A DNA stretch of 64,000 nt, from positions 382,631 through 446,630 of the forward strand of contig NW_013657666.1 of assembly GCF_000142905.1 (NCBI RefSeq). Direction: 5' to 3'. Below are positions 45,771 to 49,318 of this stretch, piece by piece; the first letter of the stretch is position 1, and every line of letters starts with the position of its first letter. The notes below the pieces were generated by a model that was given only the letters and a program-made list of their open reading frames with translations, was not told where the DNA came from and made no database searches. The stretch comes from Thecamonas trahens ATCC 50062 (lineage: Eukaryota > Protista > Apusomonadida). The position numbers and the translations under genes were made by a program.

Positions 45771-47264
45771 TCAGGAGAAGATCGGATCGGGGAGGAGCTC
45801 GGGCCGGAGGCGCGGCGGCGAGCGACCGAGGTCGGCCGAGGTCGAGGCGTAGGCAGCCGAGACCAGCTTGTTGTGCAGGTCGCGGACATGGGCATCCGAC
45901 ACGACCAGCTCGTCAGCGAGCTTGGCCAGCGTGTCGTGGGCGGCAACGAGGCCTTTCGACTTGGCTTCGATCTCGCGCTCGGCGCAGAGCAGCTCGTCCA
46001 GAGTGGCGCGCAGCGAGTCTCGCAGCCGGTCGGCCTCGTCCTCGGCCTCGCGTCGGGCGCGCTGCTCCATATGCAGTGCGTGCTCGAGTTCGCCGATGCG
46101 TGACTGCAACTCGGCGACGCGAAGGTGGGTCTGGGCGGCATGGCTCGGCGGCGTTGCCGCCTCGCGCTCGCTTCGGACCCGGGCACGCTCGCGAGTGAGC
46201 GCCAGTTCTTGGGTGAGGCTCTCGATGATGCGATGGAGGCGAGCCATGTCAGAGTTGCGCCCCTCGTCGACGACATCATGGTCTGCGGATGTACCGTCGA
46301 ACAATTGGTTGGCGAGGTCGTGGTCTGCGGATGTGCTGTTGAGCGATTGGTCGGCGAGGTCGTGGTCTGCGGGTGTGCCGTCGAGCGATTGGTCGGCGAG
46401 GTCGCGGTCTGCGGATGTGCCGTCGAGCGATTGGTCGGCGAGGTCGCGGTCTGCGGATGTGCCGTCGAGCGATTGGTCGGCGAGGTCGTGGTCTGCGGAT
46501 GTGCCGTCGAGCGATTGGTCGGCGAGGTCGCGGTCTGCGGATGTGCCGTCGAGCGATTGGTCAGCGAGGTCGCGGTCTGCGGATGTGCCGTCGAGCGATT
46601 GGTCGGCGAGGTCGCGGTCTGCGGGTGTGCCGTCGAGCTCCTCGTCAACACCGCCGTGGTCTGCGGATGTGCCGTCGAACTCCTCGTCAACACGGCCGTG
46701 GTCTGCGGATGTAACTTCAAGTGGCTCGACGGCGTTGCCATGGCCACCAGGCGCACTTGCGCGAGAGACAGATACTTCCTCCACGGCGCCAGAAATACCA
46801 TCATCTGCAACATCAACCTCTTCCCAGCCACCCCCAGTCTCGTTGCTCAGATCGGTGCCGTCTCCGATCACGTCTTCCTCGTCATCGTAGACGTACTCAA
46901 ACTCAAACTCAAAGCCCTCGCCCTCGCCATCCGCGTCGCCTTCGCCATCCGTCTCGCCAGCCTCCCATCTATCCGCGCTCTCGCTCGCACCATCTCCAGT
47001 CCAGCATCCAGGCCCATCGTCGCAAACAGAGGCGCCTGCCGCACCAGCTGCGTTCTCTGCTGACAGCATGTCGCCGCGAGCCGCCGCAGCAGCAAGGGCC
47101 GACTCGACGCCGGAGAGGACGTGCTCGCAGGCGGTAGACGCTTCCATGAGCGCACTGTAGAGCTCGTCACTCTCGCCACCGCTGCTGGCTTGGCCTCTAC
47201 TCCCTACACCTGGTCCTCCTTCTGCTCCCGTCGCTGTCACCCTCTTGTCACCCTCTTGGCTCAT
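45771..47264 (-). CDS. Acidic hypothetical protein with 14-aa repeats and a C-terminal coiled coil
   Basis: ORF 45771-47297 with likely ATG at 47264. LDGTSADRDLADQS repeats are followed by RLHRIIESLTQELALTRE...ELEHALHMEQRARREAE. Confidence 0.75.
   Translation of the reverse strand: MSQEGDKRVTATGAEGGPGVGSRGQASSGGESDELYSALMEASTACEHVLSGVESALAAAAARGDMLSAENAAGAAGASVCDDGPGCWTGDGASESADRWEAGETDGEGDADGEGEGFEFEFEYVYDDEEDVIGDGTDLSNETGGGWEEVDVADDGISGAVEEVSVSRASAPGGHGNAVEPLEVTSADHGRVDEEFDGTSADHGGVDEELDGTPADRDLADQSLDGTSADRDLADQSLDGTSADRDLADQSLDGTSADHDLADQSLDGTSADRDLADQSLDGTSADRDLADQSLDGTPADHDLADQSLNSTSADHDLANQLFDGTSADHDVVDEGRNSDMARLHRIIESLTQELALTRERARVRSEREAATPPSHAAQTHLRVAELQSRIGELEHALHMEQRARREAEDEADRLRDSLRATLDELLCAEREIEAKSKGLVAAHDTLAKLADELVVSDAHVRDLHNKLVSAAYASTSADLGRSPPRLRPELLPDPIFS
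46270..46710 (-). repeat. 42-bp coding tandem repeat, about 10 copies
   Basis: GTCTGCGGATGTGCCGTCGAGCGATTGGTCGGCGAGGTCGCG units on the + strand. Confidence 0.9.
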
Positions 47265-47396
47265 CTCCCGCGGAAACGGTAAAGAGTAGAGTGCCAAGTG
47301 CCGTCACGCGAGTCGTCGGACGATGCGAGTCCTGACCTTGACCCGGCCATAGACGGGTGTCGATCTGATGTGGCGGGCTCTACAGAGTGTGACATG

Positions 47397-47463
47397 GATC
47401 GATTGTGTTATTCTGCCCTCGCTGGAAAACGGGGGTGCGCTCTAAGAAGAGCGCAGGTTGTTG
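47397..47463 (-). promoter_or_regulatory. H2A 3' stem-loop plus conserved downstream element
   Basis: Minus strand reads CAACAACC TGCGCTCT TCTT AGAGCGCA CCCCC GTTTTC CAGC GAGGGCAGAATAACACA ATCGATC. The stem-loop (47455-47436) starts 61 nt after the stop. Confidence 0.85.
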
Positions 47464-47516
47464 TAGGACGTGTTAGGTCCAGAGCACGCGTGCGCGAGCC
47501 GAAAGGCGAAGCTTGC

Positions 47517-47982
47517 TTACTTCTTCTTCGACTTGTTGGGGAGGAGGACGGCGTGGATGTTGGGGAGGACACCACCCTGGGCGATCGAGACGTCCTTGAG
47601 CAGCATGTTGAGCTCCTCATCGTTGCGGATGGCGAGCTGGATGTGGCGCGGGTTGATGCGCGCACGACGGTTGTCGCGGGCAGCGTTGCCAGCGAGCTCG
47701 AGGATCTCAGCCGCGAGGTACTCGAGGACAGCAGCGAGGTAGACCGGAGCACCCGAGCCGATGCGCTTGCCGTAGCGGCCCTCCTTGAGGAACCGATGGA
47801 TACGGCCAACCGGGAACTGAAGCCCGGCGCGCGAGGAGCGCGTGCGCGACTTGGACTTGCCTGTGGGCGTGGAGATGATGGTGAGTGGAGGAGGAGAAAA
47901 GAGATGGGATGAGGGGCATGATGTGTCAGCAAGTGTCCGTACCACCGCGGCCGCCCTTGCCCTTGCCACCCTTGCCAGCCAT
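47517..47982 (-). CDS. H2A: Histone H2A, join(47982..47943,47860..47517), 82-nt intron
   Basis: [13 protein letters not shown]|[26 protein letters not shown]...[27 protein letters not shown]...[15 protein letters not shown]...[19 protein letters not shown] donor and CAG acceptor are phase-compatible. Confidence 0.97.
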
Positions 47983-48203
47983 TATGTCTGTTAGGTAATG
48001 AGAATGAAGTATGCCAAACGACGCGGGTGAGGGAGGAGCAAAAAGGTGGGCAGCTTTTGAGGTGCTGGTCGTGTCCCAGTTACACAGTAGTGCATGTTGC
48101 ACAAGTGTATATTTCGGCCAGTCCCAAAAGTACAAAACCTCGCACCGGCAGCGCGCGCGCCGACGCGACCCTCGTCTGCATCCACTACTCTCAACCTATC
48201 AAC
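47983..48203. promoter_or_regulatory. Bidirectional promoter of the H2A/H2B pair
   Basis: 221 bp between head-to-head start codons. Relatively AT-rich, with GTATATTT near 48107. Confidence 0.6.
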
Positions 48204-48526
48204 ATGGCCAAGAAGTCGTCGTCCGCCCCCGCCGTCGCAAGCCGACCCAGTCGTACTCGTCGTACATCTACAAGGTGCTCAAGCAGGTGCACCCCGACAC
48301 CGGCATGTCCCGCCGCGCTATGTCGATCATGAACTCGTTTGTCAACGACACCTTTGAGAAGATCGCCCTCGAGGCCTCGCGCCTTGCCAAGTTCTCGGGC
48401 AAGCAGACCATCACCTCCCGCGAAATCCAGACCGCTGCCCGTCTCATCCTCCCCGGTGAGCTCGCCAAGCACGCCGTGTCCGAGGGCACCAAGGCCGTCA
48501 CCAAGTACACCACCTCGACTGCCTAA
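48204..48526 (+). CDS. H2B: Histone H2B (needs one extra C in the C5 run at 48226-48230)
   Basis: MAKKSSSAP + [53 protein letters not shown]...[34 protein letters not shown]. Confidence 0.95.
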
Positions 48527-48577
48527 GCGCCTCTCCTCGCCCGTCCGTGAGCATCTGCTCGCAGGCAGGCAGCCAAC

Positions 48578-48644
48578 CAACAACCTGCGCTCTTATTAGA
48601 GCGCACCCCCTTCCTTGCAGTGAGGGCAGAATAACACATCGATC
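48578..48644 (+). promoter_or_regulatory. H2B 3' stem-loop plus conserved downstream element
   Basis: CAACAACC TGCGCTCT TATT AGAGCGCA CCCCC TTCCTTG CAGT GAGGGCAGAATAACACA TCGATC. The stem-loop (48586-48605) starts 59 nt after the stop. Confidence 0.85.
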
Positions 48645-49318
48645 GACCGTCTGCTTGGCCTGCGCGTGCCCTGACCACAGCCAGCTGCCGCAGCCGATGA
48701 AGATCGGACGTGGGCATGCACGTGAGCAAGGTACTGACTTTGTGCTCTGCACGCTCCTACCCCTACCCCCTACCCCCTAACCCCTACCCCCCTATCCTCA
48801 TCTGATCGCCATTGCTCCCACATCGTGGTCCACGCAGCTGCGGCCCATCGGTGGTGGCTCCGCGGCTGCGCGCTCCTCGGCCAGCACGCACACTTCAAAG
48901 ACACCCCCTGCACACACATCTTCCACATCGAGTTCGCCATAGTTCAATGGTAAAACATGAGTTTCATGCGCTCAAGCTCCTGGTTCGAGTCCAGGTGGCG
49001 AACTACTCCTGATCGTCGTCTTTCGTCGAGATGCTCCTCGAAGGCTCGGCTGCCGCTCTGTGCGGCGCTCCCGGCTCTTCGAAGGCCAGAACTCCCGATC
49101 GAAGGGCACGATCTTCCTTTTTGCCTCATCACCCACCCTCCACACCCTCTATCGGCACCCGTGGCCAACCCAGGTTGTGTGCCGTCTGCCTCTAGACCCA
49201 TCCACACCGCGCATCGCTGCCGTCCTGTCCAGACCCCGACGCGCCGCCGCCGCACGCTGTTGCCACCATCGCTGCTAGTCCAAGCTGACTCTGCACTGCG
49301 CATGAACCTATGTGGCCT

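Follow-up and report, generated by a model that had tools for sequence, protein, structure and literature searches.

A covarying stem-loop followed by a purine-rich block as a candidate two-part 3'-end signal of core histone genes in Thecamonas trahens

The window analysed here, a single stretch of 64,000 nt from the genome of Thecamonas trahens ATCC 50062, carries at 47397-48644 a divergent histone pair, read from the sequence as H2A on the minus strand and H2B on the plus strand. The two genes are in inverted orientation and about 1.1 kb apart (Table 1). In the reference, the H2B ATG (48204) and the histone fold are in different frames owing to a run of five C at 48226-48230, and an identical run occurs in the copy on C9. 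Metagenome and Logan contigs have six C at this position and encode an intact 107-aa H2B (P0005); the five-C run is probably a homopolymer error of the reference assembly. The H2B cassette described below is followed, after about 300 nt, by a tRNA gene (48933-49003, plus strand; Rfam, 55.6 bits). A long ORF adjoining H2A (45771-47297, minus strand) encodes a tandem array of about ten 14-residue repeats (TSADRDLADQSLDG type), behind which comes a coiled-coil-like tail.

Table 1. Genes and 3' elements of the H2A–H2B locus, in window coordinates (HDE, histone downstream element)
Feature	Position	Strand	Basis
H2A HDE-like 17-nt block, purines at 13 of 17 positions, AAUAAC inside	47404..47420	-	Pattern and class comparison
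H2A variable spacer, conserved CAG(C/U) at its end	47421..47430	-	UTR alignment and class comparison
H2A C-tract, 3' flank (expected cleavage zone by analogy with animals)	47431..47435	-	Pattern match
H2A 3' stem-loop, 8-bp stem, 4-nt loop UCUU	47436..47455	-	Pattern, covariation, genome census
H2A hairpin 5' flank, A/C-rich, common to four histone classes	47456..47463	-	UTR alignment and class comparison
H2A exon 2, including stop 47517-47519	47517..47860	-	ORF and sequence reading; Histone Pfam match
H2A intron, 82 nt, GT..AG	47861..47942	-	Sequence reading; exon join in frame
H2A exon 1, ATG 47980-47982	47943..47982	-	Sequence reading; 13-residue exon
H2A–H2B divergent promoter region	47983..48203	.	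Position between both start codons
Histone H2B, 107 aa (P0005), stop 48524-48526	48204..48526	+	Sequence reading
H2B hairpin 5' flank, A/C-rich	48578..48585	+	UTR alignment
H2B 3' stem-loop, stem as in H2A, loop UAUU	48586..48605	+	Pattern, covariation, genome census
H2B C-tract (48606-48610) and variable spacer (48611-48621)	48606..48621	+	Pattern and UTR alignment
H2B HDE-like 17-nt block, identical to that of H2A	48622..48638	+	Pattern match

Both genes are followed by the same cassette, whose hairpin starts 61 nt (H2A) or 59 nt (H2B) after the stop codon. A pattern for the hairpin and C-tract together matched the window at two places only, 47431-47455 (minus) and 48586-48610 (plus), and did not match once in 100 shuffles. 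The 17-nt block is likewise present exactly twice, at the two positions in Table 1, against 0.11 expected. The spacers between C-tract and block measure 10 and 11 nt, so that the block begins 15-16 nt past the stem, and outside the cassette the two UTRs align at background level only. The initial annotation had described just this arrangement, namely a shared cassette about 60 nt past both stops, an identical 17-nt block 15-16 nt past the stem behind a variable spacer, and otherwise unrelated UTRs, and it was borne out on each of these points. We conclude that the H2A and H2B cassettes are real and lie far above chance.

The whole T. trahens assembly (28.7 Mb in 131 contigs) was then searched. 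The exact H2A/H2B cassette is present seven times genome-wide, and it is not a dispersed repeat, because all seven copies stand behind H2A or H2B paralogues. A degenerate pattern spanning the four core histone classes matched 14 genome sites and no control site, and all 14 hairpins lie behind core histone genes (seven H2A/H2B, two H3, and five H4). The stop-to-hairpin distance is about 57-61 nt in the hairpins measured in H2A/H2B and in the class comparison. The H3 genes (C34, C57) and H4 genes (C1, C41, C46, C50) share the layout of H2A/H2B with different stems: an A/C-rich 5' flank, a 7-8-bp stem, a 4-nt loop, a C-rich flank, a spacer of about 10-12 nt, and a purine-rich block. Of the places where the initial annotation had proposed to look, H3 and H4 thus bear a variant form of the cassette, whereas the H1 gene on C34 has none; neither an absence from H3/H4 nor a scatter over many non-histone loci, which it had named as evidence against its proposal, was seen.

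Among the copies compared, the hairpin was absent from the H1 gene on C34, an H2A.X-like gene, H2A.Z, an intron-bearing H3, and several variants. The H2A.X-type copy (L021; C1:307356) has a C-terminal SQEY and a canonical histone fold sequence, with no 3' hairpin. Assembly gaps affect two further loci. The fifth H4 copy, at C50:280429, bears the hairpin and is broken by a gap, and a 436-N gap on C32 (L006:1717-2152) splits a third H2A–H2B pair, most of which is lost. Downstream of the H3 gene on C57, at a distance of about 320 nt, lies an orphan copy of the H3 post-stem region (L017:2272-2320; about 45 of 49 nt identical), which lacks the 5' arm and consists of the 3' stem arm, C-tract, spacer, and block. 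A convergent gene on the opposite strand has an apparent intron whose pyrimidine tract and apparent CAG acceptor are supplied by this orphan copy.

The hairpin is an RNA structure under selection. For covariation analysis, nine distinct hairpins were collected from four histone classes and three to four related organisms. The relatives are represented by marine metagenome contigs that encode an identical H4 protein or an H2B that is 92-94% identical, with H4 coding DNA about 92% identical; a search for H3 of the relatives gave no exact record, the sole extra contig being T. trahens itself. Across the nine hairpins, pairing is kept in 66 of 66 cells (100%), with changes on both sides in six of the eight stem pairs, as compared with at most 59% pairing in slid controls. 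The covariation score was 0.60 versus 0.26 in shuffles, and none of 500 shuffles reached it. The hairpins of the relatives keep the fold with a different sequence.

Two features are invariant among the nine hairpins: a G-C second stem pair, and U at both the first and the third loop position (UCUU, UAUU, UUUU, UUUC, UCUA, UCUC). The G of the second pair and the loop U1 and U3 matter for SLBP binding in animals (10.64898/2026.10.14.759114; also textbook knowledge). The stem is 7-8 bp long, compared with 6 bp in hairpins of the Rfam Histone3 type (RF00032), and the 4-nt loop is as found there. The Histone3 model, whose gathering score is 34, gave no match in the window at that level and scored the H3 hairpins at 21.8 and 21.0 bits; these sub-threshold scores are explained by a stem longer than in animals. 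The hairpin is almost certainly an SLBP-type histone stem-loop.

The genome encodes a protein suited to bind it. A profile search of the genome detected an SLBP RNA-binding domain on C29 (Pfam SLBP_RNA_bind, PF15247; 91.2 bits, E 1e-24), and the solved structures closest to this protein are SLBP RNA-binding domains (4tux, E 4.5e-16; 4l8r, E 4.9e-14). The TPDK motif is present. LSm11 is a protein specific to the U7 snRNP, and its N-terminal domain binds FLASH. An exon-wise scan of the genome with the LSM Pfam profile found 13 Sm-fold loci, one of which, on C42, is an LSm11 orthologue. Its best solved matches are human LSm11 (9n96_D, 3e-9; 6v4x_D, 4e-9), ahead of LSm3 (4e-5) and SmD2 (3e-3), and the alignment to human LSm11 spans the N-terminal region and the split Sm fold. 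An identical database protein is assigned the Pfam domains PF28412 (LSM11_N) and LSM, and the LSm11 orthologue of a relative is 50% identical. Both SLBP and LSm11, for which the initial annotation had recommended HMM searches, are therefore encoded. SmB, SmD1, LSm4, and LSm10 were undetected by the exon-wise LSM scan, which is uninformative for LSm10. The premise of the initial annotation that LSm10 and LSm11 are essentially animal proteins is outdated, as both occur in Physarum (PMC8600027) and are reported to be distributed widely outside animals (10.64898/2026.10.14.759114). LSm11 alone is no proof of U7-type cleavage, because LSM11 homologues are reported from land plants, whose histone mRNAs are polyadenylated (10.64898/2026.10.14.759114).

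The purine-rich block was compared across classes and species. It begins at about +16 (+16 to +19) from the stem in H2A, H2B, H3, and H4, and likewise in the relatives. In T. trahens, all four classes have GGG at +16 to +21 and AAU at +24 to +26, preceded by CA at about +12 to +14 in the class comparison, and the block reads GGGCAG..AAUAAC-like. In the relatives it reads CCCAAAGAU..AAAC-like, as seen in both H2A and H2B of one contig and, in similar form, in the H2B and H4 contigs of sample ERZ27290035. The 3' core is thus kept between species, whereas the 5' half is species-specific and yet agrees across unlinked classes within a species. As judged from these alignments, the species-specific, class-shared pattern would fit a trans-acting guide that co-evolves with the block.

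Such a guide was sought in several ways. The initial annotation had envisaged a small RNA that pairs with the block and bears an Sm-like site and a hairpin, and none was found. Rfam gave no U7 match in the whole genome, a result that is uninformative because U2, U4, and U5 were missed by the same route. Of U1, U2, U4, and U5, only U1 was found by Rfam (C10:232060; 52 bits, below the gathering score), and a conserved U2 pattern had no match in the genome. The missed U2, U4, and U5 reflect either a lossy search filter or genes lying inside assembly gaps. An exact antisense core combined with an Sm-like site had no genome match. A short antisense core with an Sm site gave 45 matches versus 55 in controls, and an antisense pattern for the H3 block gave 11 versus 18 in controls; two of the H3 matches were set aside, one on C41 as lying inside coding sequence and one on C57 as a duplicated fragment.

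When the antisense 17-mer was searched with wobble pairs allowed, four extra sites appeared in the genome (C42, C4, C64, C70), of which the first is in a 5' UTR, the second adjoins a gap, and the third is within noise. The fourth, C70:17224 (L015:1497-1520), pairs with the H2A/H2B block over 13 contiguous positions (-35 kcal/mol), and no other site away from the histone genes has such long complementarity; it is located upstream of a PPR-repeat gene on the other strand, 45-65 nt from the ATG. We rejected it as a U7 gene: it has neither a U7-like Sm site nor a hairpin nor an Rfam match, and it is at chance level, with about 24 such windows expected genome-wide on extrapolation of the duplex-energy tail. 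A separate observation concerns C7, where a structured segment with the canonical Sm site AAUUUUUGG and no Rfam match lies antisense in a COX6A intron (L107:1100-1260, plus strand). This segment may be a candidate snRNA. It was rejected as the guide, its complementarity to the block being confined to G/C-rich low-complexity sequence.

Taken together, the hairpin, the conserved purine block, and the genes for SLBP and LSm11 make it probable that an animal-like system for cutting histone mRNA works in T. trahens. We lean slightly towards reading the cassette as a two-part 3'-end processing signal of the replication-type core histones, with the block used in the U7 manner. The first part, comprising the 7-8-bp stem, the 4-nt loop with U1 and U3, and the A/C-rich flanks, would be the binding site of the organism's SLBP, and this assignment is well supported. 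The second part, about 16 nt past the stem, would most likely place a U7-type snRNP containing LSm11, in the manner of a histone downstream element. CPSF73 would then cut between hairpin and block to leave a non-polyadenylated mRNA ending just past the hairpin. A fail-safe role in polyadenylation, such as has been proposed for Physarum, may fall to the AAUAAA-like hexamer within the block. We consider U7-type use of the block about as likely as not, and the further proposal that apusomonads own a true U7-type guide RNA co-evolving with the downstream element is put forward tentatively, as somewhat doubtful. The divergent, pre-metazoan processing system suggested by the initial annotation thus stands as regards its SLBP-type hairpin, its variants on H3 and H4, its SLBP and LSm11, and its restriction to histone loci; its guide RNA is the part for which the searches gave no candidate above chance level.

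In another reading, the block is a poly(A) signal: CPSF would read the hexamer, with cleavage and polyadenylation 10-30 nt further on, as the main or a fail-safe route, and the hairpin would remain in the 3' UTR as an SLBP-bound regulatory element. The initial annotation had itself offered AATAAC as such a signal. Every version of the block does contain an AAUAAA-like hexamer, differing by one mismatch (AAUAAC, AAUGAA, GAUAAA, CAUAAA, AUUAAA) or, in relative C, by two (AUCAAA). In Physarum, genes combine the hairpin, a purine-rich element, and signals of this kind, and both kinds of mRNA are made (PMC8600027), while mixed states are described in early fungi (10.64898/2026.10.14.759114). Against this reading, the canonical AAUAAA occurs in none of about ten independent cases. 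Past 59 ordinary ORF ends, in a test made crude by the use of ORFs to define gene ends, AAUAAA-like hexamers occurred at 0.32 versus 0.27 per 250 nt, with neither enrichment nor a positional peak, so that the block hexamer, unlike a canonical poly(A) signal, is not general at the gene ends of this genome. It also differs from such a signal in its fixed spacing to the hairpin and in being embedded in a longer conserved block: conservation spans 12-17 nt, far above the length of a hexamer. The 5' half of the block varies between species while being alike across classes, and the LSm11 gene has been retained. We consider polyadenylation through the block unlikely, albeit a reading to be taken seriously.

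The block could also be bound by a dedicated protein without a guide RNA, for example one that recognises its sequence specifically and partners SLBP or the cleavage factors, with LSm11 acting elsewhere. The Rfam and antisense pattern searches, which found no complementary small RNA, would agree with this, as would the persistence across species and classes of a core resembling AGA(A)U(R)AA(A)C, such as a protein site might show. These RNA searches are weak, however, having missed U2, U4, and U5 too; no function of LSm11 beyond the U7 snRNP is known, and the species-specific 5' half is accommodated more easily by a co-evolving guide. We therefore give this explanation little credence. It is very improbable that the likeness of H2A and H2B reflects mere gene conversion within the divergent pair, or a block acting at the DNA level, for example in termination: the pair is indeed inverted and closely spaced and paralogous pairs are all nearly identical, but the H2A and H2B loops and spacers differ between identical flanking blocks, the unlinked H3 and H4 genes share the layout with strand and spacing to the hairpin fixed, and the relatives keep it despite different sequence.

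At stake in the preferred reading, a two-part signal with a U7-type block, is whether the U7 snRNP is an animal invention or older. To our knowledge, the U7 snRNP is the only RNA-guided endonuclease for mRNA 3' ends, and we know of no U7 RNA validated outside animals. Thecamonas can be cultured and represents a lineage that is sister to animals plus fungi. The signal it carries is unusually clean, with four histone classes, a covarying hairpin, and a species-specific, class-shared block, and since SLBP and LSm11 are both present, the question of U7 origin is directly testable in this organism. If a U7-type guide does exist in apusomonads, it would be the first validated U7 outside animals, and RNA-guided cleavage of histone mRNA would predate the split of animals and fungi.

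The metazoan signal consists of a stem-loop and an HDE, which are read by SLBP and by the U7 snRNP (LSm10/LSm11, FLASH, CPSF73). The Thecamonas signal resembles it in its location in the 3' UTR of core histones, the 4-nt loop with U1 and U3, the G-C second pair, the A/C-rich flanks, the purine-rich element about 16 nt past the stem, and the presence of SLBP and LSm11 genes. It differs in the stem of 7-8 bp (6 in metazoans), the U-A base pair of the stem, the position of the hairpin about 60 nt past the stop, the lack of the signal on the C34 H1 gene, the Histone3 score below threshold, and the failure of our searches to find U7.

A close parallel is the non-animal Physarum polycephalum, where the hairpin is accompanied by poly(A)-like hexamers and a purine-rich element, SLBP, LSm10, and LSm11 are present, and U7 has escaped detection (PMC8600027). 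Thecamonas shares with it the hairpin, the purine-rich downstream element, the AAUAAA-like hexamers, SLBP, LSm11, and the negative U7 search. Unlike in Thecamonas, the Physarum hairpin is found also on variants and H1, there are two SLBPs, and LSm10 is reported. Poly(A)+ and total RNA have been compared in Physarum (PMC8600027). More broadly, SLBP, LSM10/11, and FLASH are reported to be widespread outside animals, and a U7-like RNA is reported only in Rozella (10.64898/2026.10.14.759114). The protist set of that study does not include apusomonads, and the study recognises the downstream element by AAA or AAGA motifs alone. Histone stem-loops of Chlamydomonas, Volvox, and Dictyostelium were described by Lopez and Samuelsson (2008, as cited in 10.64898/2026.10.14.759114); so far as that citation conveys, these organisms are like Thecamonas in having SLBP, hairpins on the four core histones, and purine-rich downstream regions. 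Thecamonas adds one lineage to the pattern known from Physarum, green algae, and others.
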